Shown: in pieces, positions 5,501 through 63,520 of the stretch
Layout: each line of letters opens with the position of its first letter
Position numbering within the stretch: the stretch's first letter is position 1
NCBI GenBank assembly: GCA_029953675.1
Contig: JAMWBK010000010.1
Location: 868,001 to 932,000, forward strand
DNA: 64,000 nt
Origin: Rhodosorus marinus CCMP1338
Lineage: Eukaryota > Plantae > Rhodophyta
Direction: 5' to 3'
Made by a program: the position numbers and the translations under genes
Notes under the pieces: generated by a model
The model's input: only the letters and a program-made list of their open reading frames with translations
What the model was told of the DNA's origin: nothing
Database searches by the model: none

Positions 5501-6282
5501 TCGCATTGACGTTGGGACGATCTTCCGAAGAAGTTTGGGAGACATTGACATTTTCGTACAATCTTCTGCTCGTTTGGAAAGTGCCAAACTCCGGGAGCGG
5601 CGCGACGCGAGCTTATTATCTTGCTATTATTGTCCTACGCGGAGGCTGTACGCTGAGAGGCGATTTTTCAGCCGCACTTCGCAATAATGTCCATTGTTCG
5701 TCTTGTCTCTATTGACAGTAACGATTGGAATGGGCCCACAATTGAGCCTTTCCATCCACAAAACAGGACCAAAGGGCGACAGCTGGGTATCTTCTCCGTA
5801 CCCTGACAGAAGTCAACTATGGCTGCGGTTCTACCTTCGAGTTTGTGCACCGGCTAGTGGCCAATCTACATCGAAGAGATTGCACACTAGTGCGTTTCCA
5901 AATTTGGACAAAGCGTTAAAGGATTCCAATCCCATTAAGCCCCCGCGCAGGAATGTTTGCCCCCCCCTCCCATGTTGCAGAATCTGCTTAACATGGGTTT
6001 GCTCACTTACCAACCCATCTCCCCTGCGCGAATAGTAGTTGGAAAGCTCCCCTATAGCACGAAAAAGCAACCTTCGAAACTGCGTACCGAAGAATATATA
6101 AATAGCGCAAGAGTAGCAGCCACGCAAGAAAGCGCATAATTCGTTTGCGTATGAAAATAATCCAATATTCTTGAAAAGCAAAAAACCGAATTATAAGGCA
6201 CCACGTGTTCTTGCATACCAATCAAGGAGCGATCTCATTCATCCAACTAAGGCTCGATTAGTGTCCTTGTTGTTCCAATAAT

Positions 6283-6400
6283 TGAAACGTCCTGAGATGA
6301 CGTTGTCGTGGTTTCAATTTCTTCGTAAATCGGCTTTTACTTTTGTCTCAGATTTAACTTCTTTTTCCTAACTCTTCCTAACTTCTTCAGCCTTTTATTC
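6283..6400. repeat. ~120-bp direct repeat, copy 1 (copy 2 at 8634-8760); 5' leader segment of the minus-strand gypsy-like element
   Basis: Both copies contain TGAAACGTCCT(G/C)AGATGACGTT...GGTTTCAATTTCTTCGTAAATCGGCTTTTACTTTTGTCTCAGATTTAACTTC. Copy 2 lies between the candidate LTR and gag of the gypsy element. Confidence 0.9.
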
Positions 6401-7765
6401 TGTTGAAACGGTCACCACACACGATTAACGGTGACCATCCGCTCTCAGCGGATAGAAGTATTGGATCTACCGTGCGCCAACAGAAGGACAATCCCCACAT
6501 TGTCCTACATATGGTAGCACCGGTGTGTGGATGGTATACGGTAGGTCAACCGGATAGAGGTTCAACGTTTGAAGTAGTTTGAACCGTACAAGACATCGAT
6601 CATTTCCACGGTATAGTAGATTACTTAGGTGGGAGATATCGACCCCAATATGGTCAGGGAAACAATAAAGAAACTATCGAAGTTTGGCTGACGGGACTTT
6701 GATCAAGGTTGGGAAACCCCGAAAAACGCAACATGGTCTTATCGCAAGGTGCGATGTTATGAGAGAGGCGTTTATTCTTTAAGGATTGGACTTTAAAGAT
6801 TGGGTTTTCGAGAGTATGGCGACGAGGACCAGGGGGAGCGCTAGCGAACATGACGCGCGCTTGAAGGACTTCGCGCTACCGTCAGTGTTTACCGGGGATC
6901 AGGATTCGTATCGATCCTTCTGGAATTGGAGACACCAGGTAGAATGCTACTTGACGGTCCAAGGACTAAGGGATGTACTCGACAACCCCATAGACGCGAC
7001 CGAAGCAGAGAAACAGTATGTTTCAGCTGTGTTCTCCGAAGTGCTGGACGGGCCAGCACTGGACACTGCCTTCGCCTCTTCCAGAGAGGCCGCTCCGGGA
7101 GAGGTGTGGGCGACACTACGGGCTATGTATGAGCCCTCATCGCACAAGGCGGTTGACAAGGTATGGAGCAGAGTGTACAGGCGGAAACTACACTCGGCTG
7201 AAGCCCCTCGGTCCCTGGTTAACTCGTTAGAAAACCAGTTTGCGGAGATACGAGAGATCACGGTCGTGCCACCCACGGAGGATGAGAAAAGACGCGTTCT
7301 CATCAAGATACTGGAGGAACGGCGTGAGTACTCAGAGTTCCTGTACAAAGCATATAAGGATCCCAATTCGAATTGGATCAGCCCGTGCAAAGACTTCGAA
7401 GAATTACACAGGCTGCGAGGATCAAATGTGGATAGGCCTGACAGGTCTACAAAGTCAGAGCCCATCGTTAAGGAGCCCAGAGAGCATCGTGTTTTGACGA
7501 TGACAGCGAAAAAGAAGAAGAGTAACCCCAAACGAATCGTGTGTTTCGGGTGTAAGAACTTCGGCCATATACGAGCCAACTGTCCTGAGGAGCAGGACAA
7601 GGAGGAAAACAGGCCGGAAACGCGAAGATTCCACGCATGAATGACTGCGGTCAGAGCTCCAGCGAGGTTCGTGCTGGACTCTGGAGCAACGGACCACATG
7701 TTCACCTCGGAGATTGCATTCTCGGGCCCCACAAGGATGGTTGACACTGACGTCACACTCGTAAA
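6401..7765 (+). mobile_element. Ty1/copia LTR retrotransposon, 3'-truncated: putative 5' LTR start, gag (ATG 6816 to TGA 7640), start of protease
   Basis: Begins abruptly with TGTTG at 6401. Gag has copia-like features (FWNWRHQVECYLTVQGLRDVL) and zinc knuckle CFGCKNFGHIRANC. In frame after the TGA comes MTAVRAPARFVLDSGATDHMF, the copia protease LDSGA motif. Coding similarity ends near 7765. LTR end and PBS (possibly CA at 6646-6647, TGG at 6651) are uncertain. Confidence 0.85.
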
Positions 7766-7966
7766 GTCCAAACGGTGTTATGAACGCGGTTTTTGGTATA
7801 CCTGCTTCCTGCACTCGTAGCTGCCAGTCTCCGCTACGCAAATCGATGACTGAAATGAACTCTGCTTGCCCAACAGAATCTAAGCAGTCGTCAATTCGGG
7901 GAGGGCTGGTTCGATTCGGGATCGCGATTGCGTTCAAGCGCCTATAGTCGAGGCAAAGGCGTTGTC

Positions 7967-8000
7967 CACCGTGACTTTTTGTCAACAAAAAGTCACGGTG
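7967..8000. repeat. Perfect 15-bp-arm palindrome inside the degenerate gypsy RT
   Basis: CACCGTGACTTTTTG-TCAA-CAAAAAGTCACGGTG. Confidence 0.95.
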
Positions 8001-8782
8001 CGGCGTAAGGGGAAGAACTGGGCCTAACCAGCCCGTTCTGTAACAGCTCCTGCACTTGTCTCTTCAGCTCTTGCCCGTCGCGCAGACTCATTCTATATGG
8101 TCTCTGGGCTGGTGGGCTTGCGCCAGGTTTCTACGCAAGTTCGAAGTTAACTTCTCTCCAGGGTGGCAAGTCCTTGACGTTTCCTCAAAACGTCAAGGAA
8201 GTTAGTGTTCGCCCAATCGGAGAAGGTTATCTGCAAACTGTCGGCATCTTGCTCAACACCTTCTGGATTCAAGGTTGTCTCAAATCCGTTGTGGGTTTTT
8301 GATTTTCGGGTGTTAACGACCACCAATATGATGCGTCTCCAGTGAGATAACCCTCGGCCAGGGTATTCTTATATTCATCGTCGTCTTCGGGTAGTCGCGC
8401 CAATTTAAAATACGTTCGTAGGCTGTTTAGGAACGTGCTAATCAACAATGCATCCCTGCGTCCGTCGTAGGTCTTCGGTTGCAGGGCCTGGATCTTTTTG
8501 AGTGACAATATTCTGGTTCTGGTTCCTGGGCCTCGGGTTTACTGGTTTTCTGGTTCTGGGCTCATTTGCGTTGTCCTTCAGGTTCTCTGGCTCCGCGTCG
8601 GTTCCTCAATCGCATGCATGGGATGAGACCAACTGAAACGTCCTCAGATGACGTTTGTTCTGGTTTCAATTTCTTCGTAAATCGGCTTTTACTTTTGTCT
8701 CAGATTTAACTTCGGTTTTCTAACCCTTCCTAACCAACTCCCTTCTTCACCCTTTTCTTCCTACGGCCAACCCAGAGAGAAA

Positions 8783-8948
8783 TGTCATAGTTACAGTATA
8801 TATAGGCTAAGGTCAGCGTGCCAAATCTTGTCACGATTCTCCACTTTAGCCCTCCCGCCATGCTATGTTTAGCCCTCAAGCCTTGCTAGGCCGTGCTAGG
8901 TTTAGCACTCTGGCCGTGCTACTGAACCTGTCTCTTCAGGACATGACA
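8783..8948 (-). repeat. Candidate 166-bp LTR of the gypsy element
   Basis: Bounded by TGTCAT...ATGACA (TG...CA with 6-bp terminal inverted repeat), directly upstream of the leader and gag on the minus strand. No second LTR in the window and no canonical TGG PBS. Confidence 0.55.
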
Positions 8949-9916
8949 AGAATGCCCCATTTACGTCCTATTGACGAAATTCTTATGACCAAACTAGGAC
9001 TCCTGGGCTTCCCGGGAAGATCTTGACTGACTCTTAGCACTATCCAATTATCATCAATTTAGTGTCCCAGCGGAAATGATATTGTGAAATAATAGTAGAA
9101 ATTCGCCGCAGAAAAAGCGTAAGTTGACTGACATACGAAATTTCTCAAACATTATAAGCCAACGAGGAGTGACGCTTAATGGATTCCTGTTTTATACATT
9201 TTTAGCTTCTAAATCTATACGGTTCGTATTTCAAAACATGGCCGACTATTCTCTGGTATGTTCAAAAAAGCGTTTAGGGTTTAAATTATGATATAATAGA
9301 ATCATAATGTAGAATTCTCTGTGGTCGAGAGGGCAAATGCGTATTTTTTTGTCGTTCGGATTGATCGGCTGTTCTAACCTTTTTTGGGGGAGGTTGTTTG
9401 GATTGACTTGCGGTTGCCCTCGAAAACTGTTTTTTTTTCTGTGTTTCATGGACGGGAGGAGAACGAGAGCCAAGAGACTGTTCACTTTCGGGTAGGATGT
9501 GTACCTGTCGAAAGGCGGAGGACGTTTCTTTCCCGGTTGCACAGGGTACTTGAACGTTCCTGAATTTCTATAGCCTTTCCGATTCTGTATGTTCTCTTAG
9601 GGTGAGCTTCATTGAAGAAGCTTTTTTGGGATCTTGGGAAGGGAGGGAAGACGCGATCTGGGATAGAATTTGGGCCTGTGGGTTTTCTGTTCTCATTTTT
9701 TTGGAACCGGTGGCTGCCTCCGGTCTTTTCTTTTTGCGCAGTTCATCTGGATCCGCTGCGATCGAACTGTTCGTGTGCTGTTTTCGGACGGAGAGTAAGA
9801 GCGTGGGGACTTGGGAGTGATGTACTGAGGTTGGAGTTGCTTGGGTCGGGTGTGGAAGAAGTGGAAGGGTCTAGAATGGTGTGTAAATTGTCTTTTTCGG
9901 CTTGGTGAACTCAGAA

Positions 9917-13194: not shown

Positions 13195-16100
13195 CTTTCC
13201 CAACCCTTCCTCAACCGCTACAAGTACTTAATAAAAACACACCAACAAAATACAACATAAACGCTCTCGAGACCCTGCTTTCCCTCTAAACAGAAAGTCG
13301 CTGAGAGCCAAACAATCAAATCCCTCCCAAAAACAAACCAACAAACAGAAACCCTCACAAACCCATTCAAATGCGCCCCCCACCCACTCCCCTACCCCCC
13401 CAAGAACTATGAAAACAAGTCTTGTGAGCAGGACTCACACTACTCCCAACCCTCCTCCCCACACACACCCAACGTCCCTACGCCTTTCTCCTAAGGCAAC
13501 GACCGAATCCAACCCAACCCAACCCTCCAAAAAAAAAAGAAGATACAGCTCGAGCCCTCTTCTCCTCCTCCCCTTTCCGATCAATCGCCTTGATCAAACA
13601 TTCCCATTCACACCATGGATCGAACCTACCAATACCCCAAGCCCCTTCAAGAAGACGAATAATCAATCCCGTAATCACTTTCTTGCTTAAGGCCAAAAAC
13701 AAAAGAATTCCTTCACCATCCACGTAGGGCCAGGAAACAACTCCAAACCTTCGTCATCATCAAACCGAAAGAGCAAAAGCCGAAGGAAAAAAAGCAAGGG
13801 ATCCAGTACGCTTAACACAGATCTTCACAGCGGAGCACAACGAAACGGAACGAAATCTGTAGCTTTCGCTATAATGCGGGAGAGTTTAACACTTCACTCT
13901 TAACCTGTGCTCACTCAAACAGTTCTCCTTCCTCTTCCAAATCAACCACCACAAAAGCAAAAAACAAAAGAGACAGACGCACACCCCCTCCACACCCCCC
14001 CCATCGCCATCCTTACAACCAAAAACCTCAATAAACCAAACAAAAAACAAATAATAGCGCACCTCTCATCAGCATCCCGCCGATCAGAATTAATGCCCGT
14101 ATAGTTCTATATATAAGTCTATAGCTATCCTGAATAAGGACAAAATATTTAAAATCGTTCTTTTTGTGACCTATTGCTATTTTAGATAGTCATTGATTAT
14201 GATATCGACCCAGGTGCCGGGCAAAATTTCAAAAACTTCTGGGACTTTGTAGTTATATTATGAGTATGATCTTAGATTAAGATTTCTGTATGTTTGTTTT
14301 CGACGGTTTTGTTTCTGAATTTGAACAAGACGATATAAATTTAGATGGCCCTGTCCTTTTCTTTTGGCATCACAAAAAAAAGAAAAATGGTTTTGAGTTA
14401 GAAAAGTTGTTTAAAAACTTACTGCGCTCGCGGTGGTGTGTGGGCGGGACGGGTTCTGGGGGTTTTTGTTGAATTGTCTTCATGAAGGAAATTACGCAAT
14501 CGCGAAGCGGGACAGAAAAGGGAAAGGAGGATGTGTCTGGCTGTGAATTTGGATAGATTTCCTAGAAAATGTCAAAGGATGAGTTAGATTTTATACAAAA
14601 ATAGATTAGTGACACAATATATACGTCCGATGTTTCATGATTGGGGAGTTCACAAGTGATTTCGGCTAGATCACTGGAGCATGAAACGGGACGGTGGGTT
14701 GTAAAATTGAAATTTTTTTGGATCTGTTGTGCAGTCTACGTAGCAACGCAAACTGAGCGTGGGGAGGACACAGGATCCATGGCTTCTGACGGAAATAACA
14801 AAAACCATGATCGATAAGGCAGCTGCGCATTACCACATGCAACAGCACCAGACAGTTGGTTGATGATTGCGCAGACTGGCAGTAGTGTTATATTTGGTCT
14901 GACATCCGGCTGCGGGGTTCTGTTCTGCAAGCTAGTTGGACACGAAGGAATGAAGCACCCAAGGGCTATCGTTCGGATTCTCATCAGCTTCCCAACCTCG
15001 TCCTCGTGAGAAGGAGTTCACAGACTTGACCGCATCCCCAAACTATGCCCCTAGGTCTAGAGCTTGCCCAGAGATTTTCAGCCGGTCCGCTTCTCCCGGA
15101 CCGACTATGAATCGCTTAAATGTTTTGCATGGACCACAGAGCCCGAAAAAGCTTCCTACCGTAGATGATCAGTATTGGAACACGCTTATCTAATATTCAA
15201 GAGCTTTCGAAGTATTTCCGTGTTTATTGCCTTTTGGCCCAGGGGTTAGGTTGAAGTATCAAAACAGTATTGGTATGGAAAATAAAAATAAAATAGGAAG
15301 TTTGTGCCTCGAATGAACCGGTTGTATTTTTCGACGGTTCCATTCATGGCCGTCGACGATGACCTCGAAAATCTAGTGAAAAACAGTCAATCATAGTGAC
15401 TTCTCCGCAAGGAGTTGCGCAGAAACAAAATAAATAAGGACCTAGTCCTATTTGTGTGGAACCGCCTGCTCTAGAAAAGCATCAGCCTGAACCGCAAATA
15501 CACATTTGTGTAGGAACTTTTTAAGGCCTTGCAACAACACAAAGAATCATCCAAATCGGTCTAATATTAAAAGCAAACCAATTTAAAAACACTAGCATTG
15601 GTCACTACCCCACCGTTCAGGAAGCGCATCCCCCGAACGTCTCACATATTGATAAGCGTCTTCCTATTCTCCGTTCTAAATCCTCAAACCTTCGCTGGAA
15701 AGCCAGCAAGGTCATATTTAGTCAACTTTGCGATCTATTTACCCCCCCTCACAAGCTGATACAGTTTTGCGAGTCCCGACCGCCTCGCAGGCACTCCTAA
15801 ACCTGCCTTAATCAAGAACTACAACTCTTCGTTATGGTAAGAATTATAAAACAAAATATTTAAGACCGGACTGGACCACTCAGCGATGGGGGTAGTTGGG
15901 TTGATATTTTTTCAACCATTCACAGGTCAGTCGACGGAGGGCTTGGTCGCTCTCCGGAGGAGAAATTAGCGGGGGATTCCAGAATAAATCGAGTACTGTA
16001 TTGTTTAAGCAGGGTATACCGGTATAAGTTTAGTTTTTTGAGGTATCTTCGAAGTTTGTTCTGCAAAGGTCTATCAAGAATTACGTTCTACCGGAAGCAA

Positions 16101-17064: not shown

Positions 17065-20000
17065 ATGGCGGAGACTGAAGTAGCGAACGGCTCCGAGGAC
17101 GTGCTGGAGGACGTTCGGTTTGATGATGACCCGAGCGCGAGGAAAAGGTGAGTGGTTGGAAGTTTTTATTTTTTGGGGGGCCAGTTTTCGGCTGGTATTT
17201 TCTTGGTTGTCTGGGTGAAACAGGAAGGATAGAAATTTAGATCCCTTTTTTTGCCGAACGAATGGCCATACCTCCCTTTTGCTGCTGCTGTTTGAGATTA
17301 TATTCTGTCTCGCATACTCATCTTCCATTTACTCGATCTAATTTGATGACGGTGTGCTGGTCATGCCTATTCTCTTCACAGTTATCCGCTGCAGTGGCTG
17401 ATTCGCGTAAGGGAGAAAGTCACAGAAGAGCATGAGTTGACTGAGGAGGGGTCGCAGAGTATTAAGCAAGCCACGGGTGACAGAAACCAACCCGTGAGTG
17501 GAGGAGCAAGTATGATGCGAGGATCTGGTCAACGGGGGGTACGATCGCCACAGGTGTTTTCCTCGGGGAATGGGGATACTGGGTTCAGACGAGTTGACAG
17601 TGGTCGACAAGGAGGAGGGGTAGAATTCCAGCTCAGTCGGGTGCGTATCTTCTCAAGAATCTCAGACCATGCAAGGTACTGCTCCTTTCTGCTTCAGATT
17701 GGGGGTTTACATGCTTACGGCTCTCCTTGATTCGACACGGCCTTCGAAGATGAGATTGTTTGTTTGAAACGGTCAATTATGAGAACGAGAGGAGTCCTAA
17801 AGTTCTGTGCAAACTGCGTTCCTCCTCTTCGTTGCAGGGATCGCGTACAACTCAGATTCGGCTACCACTTAATAGTTCAGAAGTACAGCGAGGAAGTATG
17901 TACGAACCCCCGGCGGAACAGGTTCCGATTGAGCGGGGAGAGAACGCGTGGAAACCCTCTACTGAGGTTGACAAAGTTGACGATCGAGAGAAGAATATAA
18001 AGGAGATACGATCTCTCCTGAACAAGATCACTCTGGACACCTTTGATAAACTTTACTCAAAACTGTTTTCAATGGACTTTTCCGACGAATTGGTAAGGAT
18101 TTCCAAGGTCAGAACAACGTGTAATCCCGCCGATTTGTTGCATCTGAACAGCGAGCTTGCTCTCCCCCTCTGTGCTCTGCAGCTACTGAAAGCCCTAATT
18201 GAGGAAGTCTACGAGAAGGCATTGTTCCAAAAGGCGTACGTAATTATGTATGCAGATTTGTGCTACAGATTTAACAAGGACTACCAGGACAAGAAAAAGG
18301 AGGAGCACAAAGGTGTCCCGGAGCAGAAGATGTTTAGAAAACAGCTATTGCAGCAATGCAAGAAGGAGTTTGACACCATCGCAAGCAAGAGGGGTATTGA
18401 CCTTGATCCTGAAGAGCTTAAGAACATGGATGAGGACGATCGGGTATGTCTTGAAGCTTGTGCAAACCTGGGTCTCCAGAGCATCATACGACTGTACCAG
18501 TCCGTGATATTAATAATTTCGCTCCGTATTCGTAGACCGCAGCAGAGATGAAAGCAAAACGGCGCATGCTGGGCAACATCAGCTTTATCGGAGAATTGTA
18601 CAAAAAGGGTTTAATTCCGGAAAGGATCCTTGTAGAGCAGTGCATTCGTAGATTGTTGGATAAGATTGAAAAGGACAAGGACGAAGACTTGATAGAATGT
18701 ATTTGTCATTTGTTCACTACTACTGGGGCTCACCTGGTGCAGGTATGAGCATAGGGCGAATCCCGGAGGTATTTGCGTTTCTCACGGAGCGAGACTAAGA
18801 GTTTCGCTTGCAATAACTGTGGTGGTGTAGGTGTGGACGAAGCATGGAACTGCAGAGAAGATAGACCCGTACTTCGAAAAGATCACAGAGCTTTCCAGCG
18901 ATAAGACCCTAGCCCCAAGAATACGTTTCATGTTGAAGGACCTGCTAGACCTTCGAAACGCTGGCTGGAAGCAGGCGAGGGCACAACCGGCTCAACAGCT
19001 GAAGAAAAGAGCTGAGGTCCAGCAGGAAGTCCGCGACGAAGAAGACACTAGAGTGCAAAAGCAGGCCAGCAGCTACGGAAGAAACGATCATAGGAATTCA
19101 GGCCGAAGACAAGGTTCAGTGCAGCCGCATGTCATGAACAACATGACAAGTCATTTACAGCCTCAGAGAAGCGCAAGCTACTTGCAAGGAAACCAGAGAA
19201 AGATGCAGGTGCCAACCAGGGCAGATTCCGTTAGCAGAAACAATCTGCAAGACGTCCGCTTAGGTCCCTCAACCGGGAAAAAGCCGTGGGGTAGCCAAGC
19301 ATCTAGCGGCGCGGCGAATCAATCGGTATGTTCTTGGATTGAACTGAGCGACATTGTACTCCAGGCCAACAAAGTCAACGTTTAAACCATGTATAGGAAA
19401 TGAGGCGTAGCATGACAACACAAAAAGGCGGAAGGGAGGATAGCAACGGTCCAGACTCGCCAAGGCGGTTGAATACGCTACCCAGCCGAGGATTGAGCGG
19501 TAGCATAAACGCCCCGAAGCCGAAGGAGGAGAAGAAGGTAGACGATGAGATGAAGCCGAATATTGCGGGGTTCGCTGGTTTGTCTAACATGTGTGGCTCG
19601 TTTGAATCAGGTTAAAGCTGAGGCTCTGCTAGAAAAGGAAGCTCTAGTAGCCAAAGCGAGGAATGTCATGCAAGAGTATGCGATGTACAAGAATGCTAAC
19701 GAGTCGAGACAGTACATGAGCGAATTCCCGAGGGCGCAGCGCGCGGATGTCATCAAGATATGGGTGGAAGATGCTCTCGAAGCTGGCACGGAGCCGGGAG
19801 TTATGGTATGAGGGAGAACATCCCTGCTTTTTAGGCCGAATTTGCTGTCTTTCAGATAGTCATCTGCGCAATGGTTAACGTTTTATGTATTGTCCTACGC
19901 AGAGCGACCTCCTTATCGCGGTAACGAGTGGCGAGTCGCCACCCATGTCGGCACCTGATTTCACGAAGGGAGTCAACAGCGTTGTGGAGGTGCTGGGCGA

Positions 20001-32285: not shown

Positions 32286-34577
32286 TCAGAGAGTCACGAA
32301 GTGGGTGTAAAGGTGATCTCGAAAAGCAAAGTAGTCCTCGCTGAGGTTGGCCTGTAGATCAAAGTCGCCCACTCCCAGTTTTTTCATCGTGACTACGGCT
32401 CCAGACTCTTGGTTTTCTGTATAGAGCACACCAGCAGTTATCTCAGGCTTGAAGCTACTATCGCTCTGCTTCAGAGTCTGCTTCAGGATCGGAAGGCGCG
32501 CGTCGCCAACAAAGACCGTTGCGTGTCCGGATGAAGAACCTTCTGGCACGCTCTCCAGAATTACATCCTCACGGTCCTCCGACTGTTCTATGCGAATCCT
32601 TCCATGCACAAACGCGACTTCGCCATCCGCGATCTTCCTAAATCGAAGGCTATTGAACAAGGAGTCCGCTAGCTTCAGTCTATATACGGACGTGTCACTC
32701 GTCACGTCTACAGTCTCCTTCTTCGAAGGTGCGAAAACTGAATCCTGGCTCAGACCTAGGCCGTTGATCCCCATCTCTACTACAGCTCGAGTTTCTTCCT
32801 CCGTCCCGTGCACGACAATCAGCCGTCGTGGCGCGACCGCAGACATGAGTTCTTTCAATGAGATCCCGTCGCATAGCCCAGAGAAATCCCGGGTTACCGT
32901 TTCACATCGCACCACAATGTCTACTTGCTCCTCAACATACTTTTTGGGGATCTTTCTGCGTTCCTCTTCTTCAGAGTCCGTGACACCCTCCATCGCAAAG
33001 TTCGTGCGAATTGTGAGATCTTTCGGTTCATCATCATCCATATCATCCTCGTCCAGCTCTGCTGCGTCCTCTCCCTTCCTGAACTGTTCTGGATCTACAA
33101 TTTCTCCATAGTCGTCCCACTTTCGCTCCTTTTCCTGGTACGGGAACATTTCAAAGTGCTGTTTCTTCAGCGAGTCATATCCATCGTCTTCTTCGTCCTG
33201 ACTCGCCTCAGAATCCATCGGCTGTGGGTTCGCCTCACTGTCCATGGCATCAGGTTGGGAAGCCGTGCCTTCCTGGTTTCTTGCAGCGTCCAGTTCTTTT
33301 TGTCTCTGCGCTTCTCGCCATTCCTTCAGCTCACCACCTTCCAGTGGAACTCGCTTCTTAGTGGTCCTCGTGAGTCTCATCGGACCCTGCAAGCTCTTCA
33401 GCTCATGTGCAAGAGTACCCTTTTGTACACGGTCCACAAGCAGGACGAGATTTTTTGGGTCCTCAGCCCACTCCAGAAAGTACTGCAGGGAAAAGCCTAT
33501 CTCCATGGTTGGAAACGAAGCTAAAACAACTTTCGGAGAGGGTAAAGCATCGACATCGGCCTTCGTATGACAGAGGTGAACGTGTTTGAACTGAAAAGGG
33601 TTCTCACGTAAGAGGTCGAACCTACTTGAGACGGAGTCGGACATCCACTCGATCATGCTTTGCGCAAAATCAAAAGTATTAAACGCCACAGAATCCAGGA
33701 TAGCCACTGGGTACTGCGTTATCTTCTTCTGGGACCAGGCCTCATCGAATAAGAGCGCCACTTCGACAACCCTTCCAGCGGTGTCAACCGGTACCAGCAC
33801 ATTTCCCCCGCGTTCTAGCGCCTGGATTGCCGGTCCTGTGAGATCTAGCTTTGGAGTGATTCTAGTCAATGACTGAACACAACGCAAACGAAAATAACGA
33901 GTGGGTGAGTGCAAAGTCATTCAGCTCCAGGTCAAGTGATGTCTTACCTGAGAAGCTCCTAGAATCAGATGCGACGGCCTAGACAGGGAGAGCAACGCGG
34001 TGGGGTTCAGGTGACGTTCTTTTCGATGGTTCACGTCTACTGCATAGATGACTTCTTCCGTATCCTTCATTTCTTCAGTCTCCTTCTTCACCTTCCACAC
34101 TGTACCGCCGAGCATGTGTCCAGCGCTGTACGGGGTGATCACGATCCCATCGCCCTTCCCTGTCAAAGCGAAGGGCTGTTGGAACTTGAGCTGTGTTATC
34201 CTTTCAAAAGCGTTGTCCACATCATCCAGATCGAACTCATTGAAGTCTTCCTGCTCCTTCTTAGCAAGCACAGCGTCGTACATGAACATTTGTCCCATTC
34301 GCCAGACCGGAAGGGTCGCGAACACTGGCACATTCAACCCCAGCTTGCCCACGGCATAAGGCAGTGCTCCAAGGTGCATCACATCCGGATGCGAAAGAAG
34401 CACAGCATCAACCTGAGGAGCAATCGCCCTCAGCGGCTCCACCGTGTCCAGATTGAACCTCTCATCCCATCCACAGTCAAGCAGGACTTTATAGTTGTCG
34501 AGCTCCAGGACACCACTCAGTGCAAGCTCAGAGCTCTTCGCACCATACAATGGTGTAAACCTAACAATGGATGCCAT
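32286..34577 (-). CDS. CPSF2: Cleavage and polyadenylation specificity factor subunit 2 (CPSF100); 2 exons
   Basis: LLDCGWDERF, LLSHPDVMHLGALPY (catalytically degenerate MBL motif), YSAGHMLGGTVW, YAVDVNHRKERHLN, GGNVLVPVDTAGRVVE, MIEWMSD, KWDDYGE, DFSGLCDG. Confidence 0.95.
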
Positions 34578-34810
34578 TATAGATGTTTTATGTGCATCTC
34601 TCTAACGGATTTTCTATCCAACCTTCAAGTCCAGCACTTGATCACCCCAAAACGATCCAAGCCAGACATACATCCCAATTAACAAAAGTGACACTTATAC
34701 ATGCTTTGACTGTACTACACTGTAGGATGCTTGAATATTTCGTAAATAAAACAAAAACTGAATATGATTGTACTATCCGAATATCAGAGCTGATCGATTC
34801 TGACGAAAAA

Positions 34811-36248
34811 CTAAGGTGGTAATAGGGCACGCCCTATGCATATTAGGATACTAATTTCAAGGTTTTGCTCTAAAATGTGCCCTCTCTGCTGGTCAAATCG
34901 TCGATTCCAACTGCTGCGCTCAACTTTTGATGCCCTATATTGTGCCCTAGGCAAGCCCTATCGCCCTATGCCAAGGTGTTCTTCCGTGTGAACTCTGGGA
35001 GCGGATGAGGAGTTGGGAAATCGATGGGAGAGGGTGCGAGCTTGTAAAATGCTTCTGCTGGATGGTTAAGGGAGTAAGAACACTGAATATGGTTGAACAA
35101 GGGTGCTATGGCGGAGGTGTGGTTGAAGTACATCCGTCTGCGGTGTCGAACCTGACGTTTTAGCTATTGTTTTATCATGCACCCCTTGATCCAGCGAAGA
35201 GCTCTTCTTTTGTAGAGAGCTGGGATGTACTGAGCTTGTTCAACTCGTTCATTGTTGCAGTCGGTTGTAACCAGGAGAGTTGAGGTCGAGAGCTTCCCCG
35301 GAGAAGCTGGCTGCGGCATCTTTTTTCTTGGAGTTTTTATGTTTGGTTTGTGGCTTACCACACCCGTTTACCACGCGTTGAGACCTTTTTTTGCACTTTC
35401 TGTTGCGTCTCCTACTCCCACTTTTTGTATTAGTTTTCATGCTCTCAGGCTTGTTGTCTGAATATACAATGATGAGGATGTACTACTAGAAGTATCCTTT
35501 TTTTTTGTGAACATGGACTTTCTACTGCAGTCCTTTGATTCCTCGAATATTTCAGGACCTGTCCGATTTCCATATTGCTTGCGTTGGCCTGTGCAAAACT
35601 TTGAGAAGCGGATGCGGAAGGAGTGCTAAGTATCTCTTCGCATTCTCCCAGCCTGGATTTCTCCTCTAAGATCGTGTCCGAGATATCAGGATCAAGATGT
35701 GCTGAAGTATCGAACTCATCAAGATCTTCTGGCACATAATTTGTTTTCAAGTCTTCCTTTCCTGCTCCGTTCTGGGAGCCGGTGAGACCGTTGTTTGCCC
35801 GGTTCGCGTTGACTATACCTCAAAGTTTCAATCGTGTATGCAGTCGAAAGTTCATCATCATCCGTTCATTCAGAGCCCAAGTACCCCGAGGAAAAACGAG
35901 TGTTGCCTGAATTTCCGCTCAAAACTTTTCCCGCAAGCCCTTCCGGAAAGCAGGAAGGTCTCCTAGACTATGTACCGTATTGCGAATTTTAATTCAATAA
36001 TTCATTATATTGATAGGGCTTTCATAGTACGAACGTACTTCGAAATATGGAATTTTATAAACAAAAACAACACTAGAATAGGGCATGAATTAATAATATA
36101 TCTACGCATAGGGCAAAAAATGGCCCTATGGCCCTATGGAAGTGGTTCAGAATCGACGGGTACCGGTCGGTCGAGTTTTTTTCATTATGGAGGTGCCCTA
36201 TGGAAACCTTGACATAGGGCGAGCCCTATGGCCCTATTACCACCTTAG
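34811..36248. mobile_element. Non-autonomous TIR DNA transposon (~1.44 kb) with subterminal repeat arrays and unidentified internal cargo
   Basis: Perfect 18-bp inverted ends CTAAGGTGGTAATAGGGC (34811-34828) and GCCCTATTACCACCTTAG (36231-36248); this may include a TA target duplication. About 15 GCCCTAT/ATAGGGC motifs are confined to 34.82-34.97 kb and 36.01-36.24 kb. An inner inverted pair: TCGCCCTATGCCAAGGT vs ACCTTGACATAGGGCGA. No transposase motif seen. Confidence 0.85.
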
Positions 36249-36889
36249 CAAAAAGGAGCTCACGGTGACGATTAACCGAATTCCGTACTATTGTACTAGG
36301 AGCAAGACACGTACTAGCAATCGTGTGGCTCTGAAAAAAGGAAGAAAAATTAGGATTTCACAACCCCCGAGAAAGTTTACAAAACATGAACAACACAGCG
36401 TGGCTAAATAGTCTCGTAGCTGTCACTACCCATAACCCCCTAATAAAAATTCCCAAAATAGATATCTGAATTGGTTGTGAAAGACAAAAACATCCAATAA
36501 ATTATATTGCGCATATCAGAAAAATTGACGCTTACAAATGCCATTCGCGTGGTGGACCAAATGCAAATCAATTTTTACATCACAGTCACCACATACGCTT
36601 CAATCCAAAACACAATAATATCATTCTACATAAACTATCTAAGTATATATGCAATCAATATTAGTATATTTGCTTAATATTGAGATGACGCTTATGAAGT
36701 ATTTTTGAAATAGACAACAGCTGGTGCAGTGGAGATTGGGAATGGCATTTTGGAGGAGTTGCATTCAAGTTGCCAGGCTACGTTGGGAGGGGGAGGAGTG
36801 GGGCGGGTTGGGAGGGGAGAGAGGGTAAGAATTGGCTGAAAAGAGGTCCTTGTAGAAGATGTTTCAGTATGTCTGTCTGGTTCTATTAG

Positions 36890-37699
36890 ATGAAGATGGG
36901 GTTCATTGGTTTGCGAGTTTGTGGGGAGGGCCTGTTGGAGTTCAGGAAAGCGGGTGCGGTGTGCAGGGGGGGGAGGAAAGGGGTTTTGGTGACGGCTAAG
37001 AATGGCTCTCTGGAGGAAAGGCTGAATTCGGTTTCTTTTGGATATGAAAGGGAGCCGCTGCTGCGTGGTTTGCCTGGTAAGTGTGCAGGGTGTCCGGGGC
37101 GAGTACGCTGGACTTGCCCGAAGGGGCATGTGATCAACGCAGTGGAAGGGTCTCTGTGCTGTAAGATTTGTCCGGCTTGTTTAGTGGAGGATTCTCCTCT
37201 ATTGAGAAGAGAGAAAGGCGGGAAAAGTCGATTGTCACTGCAGGAGTTTAAGCTTTTGGCTGTGGAGAAAGGGGGTTTGTGTTTGAGTCATAAATACTAC
37301 AACTCGAAAACGCCACTCCGATGGAAATGCGGCAAGGGCCACGAATGGGAATCCACCCCTGAAAACGTGCGCCGAGGATCTTGGTGCCCGACGTGTAGAA
37401 AGGAGGAGAGGAAGCTAACCATCGACGATATGAGAAAGACTGCACAGACGTTTGGTGGGACGTGCTTGAGCAAAACGTATTCAAATATTAAGGAGAAGCT
37501 AACCTGGAGGTGTGCCAATGGACATATATTTGAAATGGCACCCAACAACATAAGGCGTTTCTCTGGATCTAGAAAACCGTCCTGGTGCAAGGAATGCAGC
37601 AAACAGGAGACGGTGACCAAGGTACAGCAGGCCAAGGCCGTGAAGACGATGCTCAAAGTTGAGCCGAACCGTACCAAGAAGAGTATCGTATCATCTTAA
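36890..37699 (+). CDS. Intronless protein with three zinc-ribbon/treble-clef repeats and a putative plastid transit peptide
   Basis: RWTCPKGH...CKICPAC; GGLCLSHKYYNSKTPLRWKCGKGHEW...RGSWCPTC; GGTCLSKTYSNIKEKLTWRCANGHIF...SWCKEC. N-terminus MKMGFIGLRVC... Confidence 0.8.
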   Translation: MKMGFIGLRVCGEGLLEFRKAGAVCRGGRKGVLVTAKNGSLEERLNSVSFGYEREPLLRGLPGKCAGCPGRVRWTCPKGHVINAVEGSLCCKICPACLVEDSPLLRREKGGKSRLSLQEFKLLAVEKGGLCLSHKYYNSKTPLRWKCGKGHEWESTPENVRRGSWCPTCRKEERKLTIDDMRKTAQTFGGTCLSKTYSNIKEKLTWRCANGHIFEMAPNNIRRFSGSRKPSWCKECSKQETVTKVQQAKAVKTMLKVEPNRTKKSIVSS

Positions 37700-58227: not shown

Positions 58228-59184
58228 TCACTTCTTTCCTGTGTCGGCATTGTGATTTCCGTATATCGATGTAAAACAGTCACAAGGGATGCCCTCCGAA
58301 TCTAGTCGTAACCCAAACACCTGTGCACCGGACGGTGTTGACATTCCGAAAAACAGCTCTGAGCTCTCACCGATCACTTCCGGTACACATGCGAACATGG
58401 AGTCTCGCATGGGTAAGAGTGTCCTGTCTGCCCCAAACATATTGTTGAAGTGGGCATCCTCATCCGTCGGCTCGCAATATTTCTTCTCTCCACCGCTAAG
58501 TGTCAGTGCCATAGACGATGTAGGTTCTAGCGATGGAATCTCCTTGATTCTGTTGATCGGGGTAGTGGATTCGTCTATCGGCACCTTGTCTGGTATGGTG
58601 TCGTCTCTGTATGAGCAGATATGAAACTCTGTCAGCCGCCGCTTAGGCTTGTCAGGAAGGGGCTCGTAGAAAGCAAGAATCAGTCGGCGACTGAAGTCTG
58701 TGGTGAAGAAGTTGACTTCGACTATCCACTTGCCGTTTTGCGGGTTCCATTGCGCTGTGGACTGCGCTGCTAACCCCGGCATAACGTACGAAGTCCTTGT
58801 TGGTCCTTTGAAATCATCGTAGGTTAGCTTCTTAGCTGGTCCGTGATACTCCTTGTTAGCCGTCTTTCGGCCTTCCCATGTTCCGCTATCCGGGGTATCC
58901 TCAGGAAATTTGATAATATAGTGCAAGTCTCCTTTGTCCTTGGGTTCTTCAAGCCTGCCTTGCTTGAACTCCCTTTTCTCGTAAGTACCAACCCACTCCC
59001 CGCCCAGTAGACCTCGCACCAAGTCCCATTGCTCCTTGTGGACATCTTCCTGAGTCATTATGTTGGCCGCTTTAAGCGCCGCAGCCATCCTCCGCCTCTG
59101 CGGCACTGGCCGGTGCGTACATTGCGCCACATCCGAATATTTCAATGAATGAGCGGATGTACCGCTGACGAAACAGACGTCCAT
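58228..59184 (-). CDS. Tandem paralogue A: putative plastid-targeted DUF3598/BFA1-like (calycin-fold) protein
   Basis: MDVCFVSG... transit-like start. EQWDLVRGLLGGEWVGTY, EVNF..DFSRRLILAFY and TLLPMRDSMFACVP..ELFFG resemble the cyanobacterial DUF3598 pattern (QW...LGxWxGS / RRLRLVQLY / LLPDG..CP). An in-frame upstream ATG exists at 59454. Confidence 0.6.
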   Translation of the reverse strand: MDVCFVSGTSAHSLKYSDVAQCTHRPVPQRRRMAAALKAANIMTQEDVHKEQWDLVRGLLGGEWVGTYEKREFKQGRLEEPKDKGDLHYIIKFPEDTPDSGTWEGRKTANKEYHGPAKKLTYDDFKGPTRTSYVMPGLAAQSTAQWNPQNGKWIVEVNFFTTDFSRRLILAFYEPLPDKPKRRLTEFHICSYRDDTIPDKVPIDESTTPINRIKEIPSLEPTSSMALTLSGGEKKYCEPTDEDAHFNNMFGADRTLLPMRDSMFACVPEVIGESSELFFGMSTPSGAQVFGLRLDSEGIPCDCFTSIYGNHNADTGKK

Positions 59185-59671
59185 GTCGTGATCGAAGATA
59201 AATCCGTTCGTTCGATTCGAAGGATAATGAGTTCCAGACGCACTAGCCCACCACTCCAAACGCAGCAGCATATCTGAGGTGGATACCTCAAGAGCAAGGC
59301 CATCCCCATTTCGGCTTCCTTCCAATTTGTACCCCCAGACCAGCGTAATCCGTTTGTTCGATTCGAAGGGTAATGAGGCAAATACGCGCTGGCTCACCAC
59401 TCCAAATTCCAGGTCAAGCATATCCGAAGTGGACAGCTCAAAGGGTACGGCCATTGCCGTCAGCGAGCAATCCCAATTTAGATTCCGTTTCCGTCGAAAA
59501 ATGATTCCATATCAAAGTTGATTTCCGTTCCCATTCTGTTTAGAAATTCAATTATACTGTGCCGCACAATCGTTTGCACTCTCGTTGATTGGTCATAGAG
59601 GTGCTTAATACTACAAAACTCTCGAAAATGAGAGACTCGGGGTTGACAAAGAAGAACCTACGGATAGCGGA

Positions 59672-59857
59672 TGAGGGAGGTGCTTGTTGGCTTCTTTGGG
59701 CCTTTCTGAACAACCCAGGGCGTCTTGATAGCCTCCTCACGGAGCTCACGGAGCTATCCTTGACCCTCTGGCGCGTTGCTTTATTGTTGGACGCGCGTCA
59801 TCAGCGTCATGTTTCTCGCTTCTCAGGGTTGTTTGGCTCTGAATAAACGGATGATGA
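59672..59857 (+). mobile_element. Short 5'-truncated copy of the retroelement 3' end seen at 31100-31280, inserted in the paralogue A-B spacer
   Basis: Reads NNPGRLDSLLTELTELSLTLWRVALLL...RFSGLFGSE-stop, then ACG(GAT)3. CGGATGA occurs on both sides (59668-59674 and 59848-59854). The segment is missing from the homologous B-C spacer. Confidence 0.6.
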
Positions 59858-60581
59858 TCCGGCTCATCTTGATACGTTTTCGAACTAGTAAGAATATGAA
59901 TGAAATTTCGTATAGAATTTAATAGAGGCCATGCTTTTTGTTGGGTTTTTCTAAGGGGTCTGCTGTTTCCGAAAATGGGCCATCAGCAGGTTTGATGAAG
60001 TCAGTGGAAGCCAGAGGGTAGTAAATATGTTTTCAACTTTGTGGAACGAAATTTTGACAGCTTCAAAGATCATGTAACGAGATACCCGAGTTTTCCCCGA
60101 CGTGAAGCTCGGGGTCAGACCCTGATGCAACCCCAGGTACTATGAGAAACTTCAACGACCACAGTTTTTGCAATCTTTCAGGTATTTTATTGATTGACGT
60201 CCTAGTGTGTGCATTACGAAGAGCTGATCCATAGGTAGCCACCACTTTGTTTCTAGAAGTGTTCAAGAGGCCTCCTAACCTCGGGACTGAGCATTAGCAT
60301 CAACGCTGTCTCTATTTGAGTGAAGCACGCGTAGGTAGGAATTGAGGAATTGCAAATGAATACATTCATTCGGCATTGATATCTGCAGCAGAAGGCCGTT
60401 TTCTAGTTCAGGGCAGAATACAAAGGTCGCTTCCTCCTGCCTTTATTCAAGCTTAGCTGCACAAATTGAATGGCAACATTCCTACTATAGCTGTGAAGAC
60501 GTGACAAAACAAGCAAAACAACAACCCAAAAACAACGCAAAAAACACAAAACAGAAACGAACAGCAGCGAACGTGAGGAGC

Positions 60582-61526
60582 TCACTTCTTTCCTGTGTTG
60601 CCATTATGATTTCCGTATATCGATGTAAAACAGTCACAAGGGATGCCCTCCGAATCTAGTCGTAACCCAAACACCTGTGCACCGGACGATGTTGACATTC
60701 CGAAAAACAGCTCTGACTCCGAGCTCTCACCGATCACTTCCGGTACACATGCGAACATGGAGTCTCGCATGGGTAAGAGTGTCCTGTCTGCTCCAAACAT
60801 ATTGTTGAAGTGGGCATCCTCATCCGTCGGCTCGTAATATTTCTTCTCTCCACCGCGAAGTGTCAGTGCCATAGACGATGTTGGTTCTAACGATGGAATC
60901 TCCTTGATTCTGTTGATCGGGGTAATGGATTCGTCTATCGGCACCTTGTCTGGTATTCTGTCGTCTCTGTATGAGCAGATATGAAACTCTGTCAGCCGCC
61001 GCTTAGGCTTGTCAGGAAGGGGCTCGTAGAAAGCAAGAATCATGCGGCGACTGAAGTCTGTGGTAACGAAGTTGACTTCGAGTATCGGGTTCCGTGGCGA
61101 TGTGGAATGTCCAACTACCCCCGGTAAAAAGTACGCTGTCTCGTCGTTTTTGAATTTTTCATAGGTTAGATTCTTAAAACGTCCTTGAAACTCCTTATTC
61201 GCCGTCTTTCGGCCTTCCCATGTGCCGCTATCTGGGGTTTCCTCAGGAAATTTGATAATATAGTGCAAATCTCCTCTGTCCTTGGGTTCTTCAAGCCTGC
61301 CTTGCTTGAAATCCCTTTTCTCGTAAGTACCAACCCAATCCCCGTCCAGTACAACTCGCACCGAGTCCCATTGCTCCCTCTGGATTTCTTCATGCGTAAG
61401 CACGTTGGCCGCTTTAAGAGCCGCAGTCGTCCCCCTCCACTGCGGCATTGGCTGGTACGTGCAGCGCTCAGTATCCGAATATTTCAATGAATGAACGAAT
61501 GTACCACTGACGAAACAGAGATTCAT
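60582..61526 (-). CDS. Tandem paralogue B (DUF3598-like)
   Basis: MNLCFVSG... start. Colinear with paralogue A; the C-terminal half is nearly identical at nucleotide level. Confidence 0.6.
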   Translation of the reverse strand: MNLCFVSGTFVHSLKYSDTERCTYQPMPQWRGTTAALKAANVLTHEEIQREQWDSVRVVLDGDWVGTYEKRDFKQGRLEEPKDRGDLHYIIKFPEETPDSGTWEGRKTANKEFQGRFKNLTYEKFKNDETAYFLPGVVGHSTSPRNPILEVNFVTTDFSRRMILAFYEPLPDKPKRRLTEFHICSYRDDRIPDKVPIDESITPINRIKEIPSLEPTSSMALTLRGGEKKYYEPTDEDAHFNNMFGADRTLLPMRDSMFACVPEVIGESSESELFFGMSTSSGAQVFGLRLDSEGIPCDCFTSIYGNHNGNTGKK

Positions 61527-61962
61527 GGCGTAATCCATTCGTTGGATTCGAAGGATTGTAGGTCCCGTACCCACAAAGCCGCCGCTCCAAACGCAGTAGC
61601 ATATCGGAAGCGCATATAGCTCAAGAGCAAGGCCATTGCCATTTCGACTTCCTTCCAATTTATAACCCCAGATTAGCGTATTCCGTTTGTTCGATTCGAA
61701 GGATAATCAGTCTCATACGCACTAGCCCACCACTCAAAACCCAGCAGCGTAGAGGCGAAGTGTATCGACTTCAGCTACGATGCTGGGTAGGGGGGTAGCT
61801 CAAGGGGAAAAGGCCAATATTGCGATTTCGGCTTCCAGTTTTCCATTCCATTTCCGTCCAAAAATTGAATGGAAATCAACTTTGATGGGCGTTAGAACTA
61901 CAGTGGTACATTCCCATAAATTGTTCCACCCTCATTGATTGGTCGTGTACTTGCTCAGTTCC

Positions 61963-62240
61963 GCAAAAAACTTTCAAAAATGGGAGACTTGGGGGTATCA
62001 GGAAGAATCCACGATCAGCAATCATTTTGAGCGTGTTGTCAGACAACGAAAACACCACGCACGAAATTTCGAATAAAATTAATACAGGATTTGTTGGAGT
62101 TACAAAAAAACCATCAAAAATGATAGACTCGCGGTATCAGGAAGAATCCGAGATGATCAATCTATTTGAGAGTTTTTCAGACAACGAATTACTTACATGG
62201 ATGAAATTTCGAATAAAATTAATAGAGGATTTTTCCTTTG
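61963..62240. repeat. Diverged tandem duplication (~140 bp x 2) in the B-C spacer
   Basis: CAAAAATG..AGACT..GGTATCAGGAAGAATCC...CAGACAACGAA...GAAATTTCGAATAAAATTAATA.AGGATTT occurs at ~61963 and ~62101. Confidence 0.85.
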
Positions 62241-62569
62241 TTGGATTTCCTTATGGGGGCTGTTCCGGTGTTACGGCGTTGAGGCTCGGCCTTGCGTAAG
62301 GAGTGTACTTCTCCTTAGTTTGGGGGGGGTGTTGCATAGCCTTCGAATAAAGGTTTTGGTTTTGGTTTCCGAAAAAAGCTTCAGTACTTATTGAGAGGTC
62401 AGTGCAAGCCCAGGGGGACGTAAAATACTTTGAACTCTTTTTCGAACGAGGTTCGAGAGCAAACAGCTTCAAACAAATTTTCCCCATGCAACGAGATACG
62501 GGAAATTTTCTCGGATATTAAGCTCGGGGTATCTACCAGGCCCGGATGTAAAGCGAGGCACCCACCCTA

Positions 62570-63520
62570 TTAAGCCTTTGGTCTACTGTTGTGATTTCCG
62601 TAGATCGAAGTAAACCAGTCACATTGCACGCCATTTGAATCCAGTCTTAGACCAGCTACCTGGGCTGAGGATGGCATTATCACCCCGAAATACAATGATG
62701 AATTTGCACCGACCACCTCCGGAACACACGCAAACATTGAGTCCCGAAGCGGTAAGATCTTCATGTCAGGGTTAAGCATCCCTGTGCAATGGGTTTCCTC
62801 ATCTGTAGGGTTATAATATTTTGTCTCTCCACCGCGTATGGTCAGTCCCAGGCAAGCAACCGGTTCTAGGGACGGAATTTCCGTTATTCGATCGATTGCA
62901 GTTGGCGACTCGATGGCCGGGACTTTCTCTGGCACGTTACTATCTCTGAATGCACCGGTTAGACAGCTTTTCAGCTTCAGAGTTTGCTTGTCATCTATAC
63001 ATTCGTAGGTAGCAATCATCATGCGGCGGCAATAGTCTGTGGAGACGAAGTTGATTTCGACTCCATTAAACGGCGACTTGGTCCCCCACCAGTTCTGCCC
63101 GACAACACCTGGGAGGATGAATTGACGGCCAAGCTTAGATCCGAAGTTCTCGTAGCTAATATGCAGAATTTGACCTTGTTTCTTCTTGTCAGCCATCTGC
63201 CTCCCTTCCCATATACAGCTATCAGGGTCATCATCTGGAAAAGAAACAATGTAGTGCAGCTCTCCAATGTCCACCGGTTCACCCAGCTTGCCATCCTTGA
63301 AATCTTGTCTCCAGTACTTCCCAAGCCAGCTCCCAGGCAGGATAGTCTTCATTGAGTCCCATTGGTCCCTACGAATCTCTTCTTGGGTCATCATGTTCGC
63401 AGCTGGGGAGGATGCAAGTCGCGTTCTTCCGCTCCTTTTCGTCGAGTCGCATCTGCTTAACGCAGCGTCAGAAGCCTTCGCAAAGAGCGCAGAGGTGTGT
63501 ACAATGAAACAGCTTTCCAT
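62570..63520 (-). CDS. Tandem paralogue C (DUF3598-like), most diverged copy
   Basis: MESCFIV... start; DQWDSMKTILPGSWLGKY, EINFVSTDYCRRMMIATY, ITEIPSLEP, LPLRDSMFACVPEV, FTSIYGNHN. Intronless 316-aa ORF. Confidence 0.65.
   Translation of the reverse strand: MESCFIVHTSALFAKASDAALSRCDSTKRSGRTRLASSPAANMMTQEEIRRDQWDSMKTILPGSWLGKYWRQDFKDGKLGEPVDIGELHYIVSFPDDDPDSCIWEGRQMADKKKQGQILHISYENFGSKLGRQFILPGVVGQNWWGTKSPFNGVEINFVSTDYCRRMMIATYECIDDKQTLKLKSCLTGAFRDSNVPEKVPAIESPTAIDRITEIPSLEPVACLGLTIRGGETKYYNPTDEETHCTGMLNPDMKILPLRDSMFACVPEVVGANSSLYFGVIMPSSAQVAGLRLDSNGVQCDWFTSIYGNHNSRPKA

Follow-up and report, generated by a model that had tools for sequence, protein, structure and literature searches.

Between two divergently transcribed genes of the red alga Rhodosorus marinus lies a 1,438-bp segment with perfectly inverted ends (positions 34811-36248), which raises the question of whether it is a mobile DNA element and, if so, of which kind and with what interior. 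The segment is part of a window of 64,000 nucleotides, i.e., the whole stretch of DNA that was analyzed. A preliminary description of the window read it as a Pack-type non-autonomous DNA transposon in the promoter region between CPSF2 and a zinc-ribbon gene. The gene on its left is CPSF2/CPSF100 because it encodes the Lactamase_B_6, Beta-Casp, RMMBL and CPSF100_C domains, and the gene on its right encodes a DUF4379 treble-clef zinc-finger protein. Both gene identities thus hold according to their domains, as does the placement of the element 234 bp upstream of the CPSF2 ATG (34577). The DUF4379 gene follows 642 bp away, so that the element occupies a divergent promoter region (Table 1). The CPSF2 frame itself is broken by a stop at 33921-33923, and the 738-aa model implies one short intron of ~75 nt.

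Among public contigs, the 269-aa protein of the DUF4379 gene is encoded on a single one, JAMWBK010000010.1 of assembly GCA_029953675.1. The nuclear genome of R. marinus (Stylonematophyceae) comprises 31.2 Mb with 8,392 genes and ~15% repeats, and its gene models stem from BRAKER trained on RNA-seq (PMC10250338). DNA transposons are reported to be very scarce in red algae and above all in R. marinus, where they make up 0.03% of the genome (PMC10250338 supplement). The only classified DNA transposon is hAT-Tag1 (9.7 kb in 35 fragments, divergence 11.7%); CRE-type LINEs account for 9% of the genome and unclassified repeats for 4.03%, and the RepeatMasker table contains no Tc1/mariner or Harbinger elements (PMC10250338 supplement). 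We consider the segment likely to be one copy, intact in structure, of a non-autonomous class II transposon of the cut-and-paste type with terminal inverted repeats (TIRs).

Table 1. Positions of the element, its parts and the neighboring genes in the window.
Feature	Position	Strand	Details
CPSF2/CPSF100	32286..34577	-	738-aa model; Lactamase_B_6, Beta-Casp, RMMBL, CPSF100_C
Candidate 6-bp duplication	34805..34810 / 36249-36254		GAAAAA / CAAAAA; with the full 18-bp TIR; 5/6, 0.9% by chance in register
Left TIR	34811..34828	+	CTAAGGTGGTAATAGGGC; outermost ATAGGGC motif forms its inner 7 nt
Candidate TA duplication	34812..34813 / 36246-36247		if the TIR starts AGGTGG (34814); 2/2, 7% by chance
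Left subterminal array	34822..34969		5 exact GCCCTAT and 2 one-mismatch copies (GCCCTCT 34879, GCCCTAG 34944)
Left palindromic pair	34822-34837		ATAGGGC-AC-GCCCTAT; opens the left array
Inverted 9-nt block	34857-34865 / 36204-36212		TCAAGGTTT; common to both ends
Inverted 9-nt block	34899-34907 / 36150-36158		CGTCGATTC; common to both ends
Interior	34970..36012		no motif, no detectable coding or RNA-family content, no gene model
Longest stop-free frame	35448..35819	-	124 codons; acidic, Ser-rich
Right subterminal array	36013..36237		9 exact GCCCTAT, both orientations
Tandem repeat	36120-36139		ATGGCCCT x2.5; within the right array
Right palindromic pair	36214-36229		ATAGGGC-GA-GCCCTAT; within the right array
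Right TIR	36231..36248	-	exact reverse complement of the left TIR
TIR tip			(C)TAAGGTGGTAATAGGGC
Bordering sequences			...GACGAAAAAC on one side, GCAAAAAGG... on the other
DUF4379 treble-clef zinc-finger gene	36890..37699	+	269 aa

Inverted ends and subterminal motif arrays

The two TIR arms are complementary at 18/18 nt (100%) and lie 1402 nt apart. In the whole window, they form the sole perfect inverted repeat of at least 18 nt with arms within 3 kb, and such a pair occurs in none of 100 Markov-simulated windows whose dinucleotide make-up was matched to the real one. The perfect 18-bp ends given in the preliminary description are therefore real and, with up to three mismatches allowed, a second copy of the TIR is absent from the window. 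A lone inverted repeat of about this size is no proof of a transposon since the window also contains a perfect 17-nt inverted repeat (GTCATCATCAAACCGAA; 13753-13769 / 17114-17130) that is probably a chance occurrence. Its arms are 3.3 kb apart, the second arm lies inside an apparent first coding exon (ATG 17066, GT 17149), and motif arrays are absent from it. The case for the element hence comes from the TIRs and the motif arrays taken together, not from the TIRs alone.

The motif GCCCTAT is present in 16 copies in the window versus 4.4 expected (sd 1.8, maximum 9, 100 shuffles). All but two of these, i.e., 14 of the 16, fall within 34822-34969 or 36013-36237, a terminal zone of 395 bp (binomial P ~1e-29), which bears out the dense subterminal arrays described earlier. 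In the element, the sites are confined to the outer 160 bp on the left and the outer 236 bp on the right, and the 1,043-bp interior contains none. The base following the motif is a G in eight of the 14 copies, giving an extended form GCCCTAT(G). Number and orientation of the motifs are unequal between the ends, with five exact copies and two near-copies on the left and nine exact copies on the right.

Read from the tip inwards, the left end is CTAAGGTGGTAATAGGGC-A-CGCCCTATG and the right end, as its reverse complement, CTAAGGTGGTAATAGGGC-CATAGGGCT-CGCCCTATG, the right end having one additional motif copy relative to the left. Because both sides read CTAAGGTGGTAATAGGGC...CGCCCTATG, each end presents an inverted motif pair, and this palindromic pair ATAGGGC-NN-GCCCTAT is located 12-27 nt from the tip on the left and 20-35 nt from the tip on the right. 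Beyond the TIR, the ends have in common only the motif and the two 9-mers TCAAGGTTT and CGTCGATTC. When the two 260-bp ends are aligned globally outside the TIR, the score is 39, compared with 34 +/- 6.6 for shuffles, which reveals no longer subterminal inverted repeat.

A different reading takes the same features as a non-mobile cis-regulatory or architectural module of the host, in which the GCCCTAT sites of a bidirectional CPSF2/zinc-finger promoter would be bound by a host DNA-binding protein and the borders would carry an inverted duplication. The position exactly in the divergent promoter agrees with such a module, and so does the fact that a single copy is seen, both in the window and in 82 kb of the contig (positions 859850-941520, gathered by walking from four window proteins). 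Moreover, the distance of 2.3 kb between CPSF2 and the zinc-finger gene is ordinary compared with the 1.6-2.7 kb at other nearby divergent pairs, and another promoter block of the window (59511-59552 / 61845-61886) also has an imperfect inverted repeat. However, the motif is nearly absent from the other promoters in the 82 kb, with two isolated sites elsewhere in the window, and the boundary of the arrays coincides with a perfect 18-bp inverted repeat, the inner part of which is the motif itself. Furthermore, a motif-free interior of 1 kb separates the two motif zones, a layout that is diagnostic of transposon ends and not of promoters. A host module therefore seems quite unlikely, and we retain the reading of the segment as a non-autonomous transposon, which is probably what the preliminary description got right: inverted ends and asymmetric arrays are present, while a transposase and a gene model are lacking.

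Coding content of the interior

According to the preliminary description, the interior is captured host sequence, which would make the segment a Pack-type element, i.e., a TIR transposon with an interior captured from a host gene. At first sight, the composition of the interior agrees with this. It spans ~1 kb, is unrelated to the ends and holds a 124-codon acidic, Ser-rich frame, to which basic stretches adjoin; the acidic, Ser-rich open reading frame that had been pointed out (35445-35750, minus strand, with EDLDEFDTSAHLDPDISDTILEEKS) exists. However, an open frame of 124 codons or longer is reached in 15.5% of dinucleotide shuffles of the element and is thus not distinguishable from chance. 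Protein similarity argues against capture as well. In a Pfam scan of all six frames at E<=10, neither a DDE domain (in agreement with the first reading) nor any other domain is matched, and a remnant of a hAT transposase or of its dimerization domain is likewise absent. Thirteen open reading frame pieces of the interior have no homologs at E<=0.01 in a collection of 5.8 billion protein clusters, a search run without a positive control; four window proteins are present in the gene-position collection linked to it, so that the R. marinus proteome should be covered. The 124-aa frame, searched exhaustively with phmmer against 1.84 billion representatives, returns one match (E=8e-4). This is a 585-aa protein with five tandem repeats, scored over five weak stretches, and it is not credible as a homolog.

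The element contains no Rfam family at E<=1 and no tRNA according to a tRNA scan. No gene model is called between CPSF2 and the zinc-finger gene, and an exact-protein look-up of two open reading frames of the element yields no record of them as called genes.

At the DNA level, the interior does have at least one short piece in common with other genomic DNA, which speaks for capture. Its sole similarity within the 82 kb is a 37-bp match of 86% identity between 35854-35890 (plus strand) and 59858-59822 (E ~2e-6 in the fetched loci), and none of the genes in the 82 kb of contig is matched by the interior. The partner (59822-59858) is intergenic and precedes the ATG of a 408-aa gene of no known function by 370-400 bp, and at both sites the piece is oriented like the next downstream gene. 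It might be either a dispersed repeat or a shared regulatory piece. The preliminary description had listed a 45-bp piece of a LINE-like tail here; a match exists, but over 37 bp, and the open reading frames neighboring the partner show no reverse-transcriptase or LINE signal.

In sum of these searches, captured host sequence is unsupported because the interior has no Pfam or Rfam match, no protein homolog and no gene model, and its longest frame is of chance-level length. A Pack-type element is thus highly improbable. The interior of the transposon is best explained as filler that does not code or as what is left of a decayed parent element, not as a captured host gene.

Target-site duplication and superfamily

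The flanks were tabulated in all registers for the single copy, and no register gives a clean target-site duplication of more than 2 bp. The preliminary description proposed either a TA duplication or TAA/TTA flanks. The first of these matches at both bases if the TIR starts at AGGTGG, and a clean TA favors a 2-bp family, Tc1/mariner-like or otherwise. TA is palindromic, and this match is therefore not separable from an extension of the inverted repeat, which runs one base past the TA (C/G). The second, which would point to PIF/Harbinger or Zator, is rejected since the left flank TAA and the right flank TTA are each other's reverse complement instead of a direct repeat. The preliminary description had missed another option, in which the full 18-bp TIR is flanked by a 6-bp A-rich duplication (5/6). 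In the hAT register, where the TIR would begin at T34812, the 8-bp flanks CGAAAAAC / GCAAAAAG are identical at 5/8 positions. The TIRs of hAT elements start with 5'-YARNG, and the tip TAAGG at 34812-34816 fits this rule. Merlin elements, which have a 5'-GG tip and duplications of 8-9 bp (PMC8101967), were considered as well; the flanks in the GG register (AAAAACTAA / TTAGCAAAA) do not match, and this candidate was dropped.

Repbase sorts non-autonomous elements by the length of the duplication and the first 11 terminal bases, and hAT families with other duplication lengths, e.g., 7 bp, are on record there (PMC4455052). Since one copy settles neither the duplication length nor the terminal bases, the superfamily is ambiguous, as had been stated, with TA at 2/2, the 6-bp duplication at 5/6 and the 8-bp duplication at 5/8. 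A 5-8-bp A-rich duplication, either with hAT-like architecture or in another family, is the assignment that we tentatively place first. A TA duplication, as in Tc1/mariner-like elements or another 2-bp family, follows closely. Superfamilies outside these groups appear unlikely, and the families with a 3-bp TWA duplication more so.

Ac/Ds-type hAT, En/Spm and P elements classically combine short TIRs with subterminal arrays in which a short motif is repeated asymmetrically and in both orientations. Subterminal sites of this kind elsewhere in the hAT superfamily are AAACGG of Ac and GTGGC of Hermes. The architecture of the R. marinus element is most like the Ac/Ds type with its short TIR and its asymmetric motif arrays in two orientations. 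As in Ds, dTph1 and Tag1 derivatives, the TIR is short (17-18 bp), with a TAAGG tip if it is counted from 34812, and a motif recurs many times, in either orientation, over the ~250 bp next to each tip. The non-coding interior and the insertion adjoining gene 5' ends would also agree with this group, and hAT-Tag1 is the one class of DNA transposon reported for the genome. In contrast to these elements, the 8-bp flanks match at 5/8, which is hard to square with perfect TIRs, and the element lacks a remnant of the transposase or its dimerization domain.

The other groups compared with the element each have mismatches of their own. The Tc1/mariner (ITm) group would be suggested by the TA that flanks both ends without mismatch when the TIR is counted from AGGTGG, and presumably also by the AGGTG...TAGGG core, which recalls mariner TIRs. 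In mariner TIRs, however, the two bases before AGGT lie inside the repeat, so that the duplication here would be AC/GC. Dense subterminal motif arrays are atypical of this group, and Tc1-IS630-Pogo elements are absent from the RepeatMasker table of the genome. PIF/Harbinger (Tourist-like) and Zator elements resemble the R. marinus element in the GG start of the TIR, the TWA-type flanks and the insertion near genes; unlike in PIF/Harbinger, the TAA/TTA flanks are not direct, and Tourist/Harbinger does not appear in the repeat table of the genome. Pack-MULE and Pack-TYPE elements are likewise non-autonomous TIR elements with an interior unrelated to their ends, but here the interior has no parental gene or protein similarity, the TIRs are short and a 9-10-bp duplication is missing. 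With its 1,438 bp, the element also differs from MITEs, which measure under about 800 bp and reach a high copy number. Among transposable elements at large, it is of an ordinary kind.

Mobility, age and surroundings of the element

The element is delimited by TIRs (18/18 nt) and has no transposase gene of its own, as in non-autonomous class II transposons. It might move as follows. A transposase supplied in trans, either encoded elsewhere or now extinct, would bind the GCCCTAT(G) sites; on the terminal palindromic pair ATAGGGC-NN-GCCCTAT it would probably sit as a dimer, and additional copies of the protein could be bound along the subterminal arrays. The transposase would then pair the two ends and cut at the TIR tips, and the element would be reinserted with a short target duplication. 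Mobility is inferred and not demonstrated because one copy is seen and the genome was searched over 82 kb of contig. Outside the element, these 82 kb contain no further TIR (at up to four mismatches) and no further motif cluster. The pattern AGGTGGTAATAGGGC-N(2-12)-GCCCTAT, which fits both ends, is absent from the metagenome contigs and viral contigs searched, and a search of the literature for the TIR or motif strings matched only an unrelated primer. The search for an empty site covered metagenomes, in which identity to the CPSF2 N-terminus does not exceed 56%; these relatives are too distant to offer an orthologous site, and their loci show no similarity to the TIR or the element. Taken against the transposon reading are the single copy in 82 kb, the lack of an identified transposase partner and of a clean duplication of more than 2 bp, the presence of the chance-like perfect 17-nt inverted repeat in the same window, and a share of DNA transposons of merely 0.03% reported for the genome (PMC10250338 supplement).

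All 36 TIR bases are identical between the arms (36/36), and this therefore suggests either a fairly recent insertion or continuing constraint. A further possibility is that R. marinus has lost the partner transposase and that the element, as a domesticated or long-immobile relic, is kept as a part of the promoter. The small share of DNA transposons and the 11.7% divergence of the sole classified family (PMC10250338 supplement) would be compatible with a relic, as would the absence of a partner in our searches. The identical TIR bases, however, speak for recent insertion or constraint and against long neutral decay. We regard a relic as rather unlikely, although it overlaps with the preferred reading of a non-autonomous transposon because both posit the same origin and differ only in present activity. 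At the other extreme, the element could belong to an unclassified TIR family and be young and still mobilizable, perhaps making a 6-bp A-rich duplication and using ATAGGGC-NN-GCCCTAT as a dimeric recognition site, in a red-algal genome reported to be nearly without DNA transposons, and its ends could supply part of the essential CPSF2 promoter. This combination is improbable. If true, active cut-and-paste transposition would become accessible to study in the Stylonematophyceae for the first time.

The rarity of DNA transposons in R. marinus and the position in the promoter of an essential gene give the element some local interest. At 234 bp from the start codon of a gene for mRNA 3' processing, it offers a natural case of a transposon end that may contribute to a promoter. 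Moreover, perfect ends together with a clear candidate transposase-binding motif form a seed for classifying part of the 4% of unclassified repeats, and a tagging transposase for red algae could result from it.

Two other regions of the window have repeated or uncalled sequence. At contig positions 870561-877916 (window ~2561-9916), 7.3 kb are without a called gene and contain open reading frames of more than 270 aa on both strands (6786-7640 on the plus and 6947-7771 on the minus strand); this stretch could be a masked repeat. On the minus strand of 58228-63520, three tandem paralogous genes encode proteins of 408, 318 and 316 aa without a Pfam domain. These paralogs have conserved upstream blocks in common (59460-59650 and 61830-62000), and an imperfect 42-nt inverted-repeat pair at 59511-59552 / 61845-61886 is rich in GGAAA(C/T)GGAAT-like units. 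The pair resembles a promoter module that was duplicated rather than the ends of a transposon.
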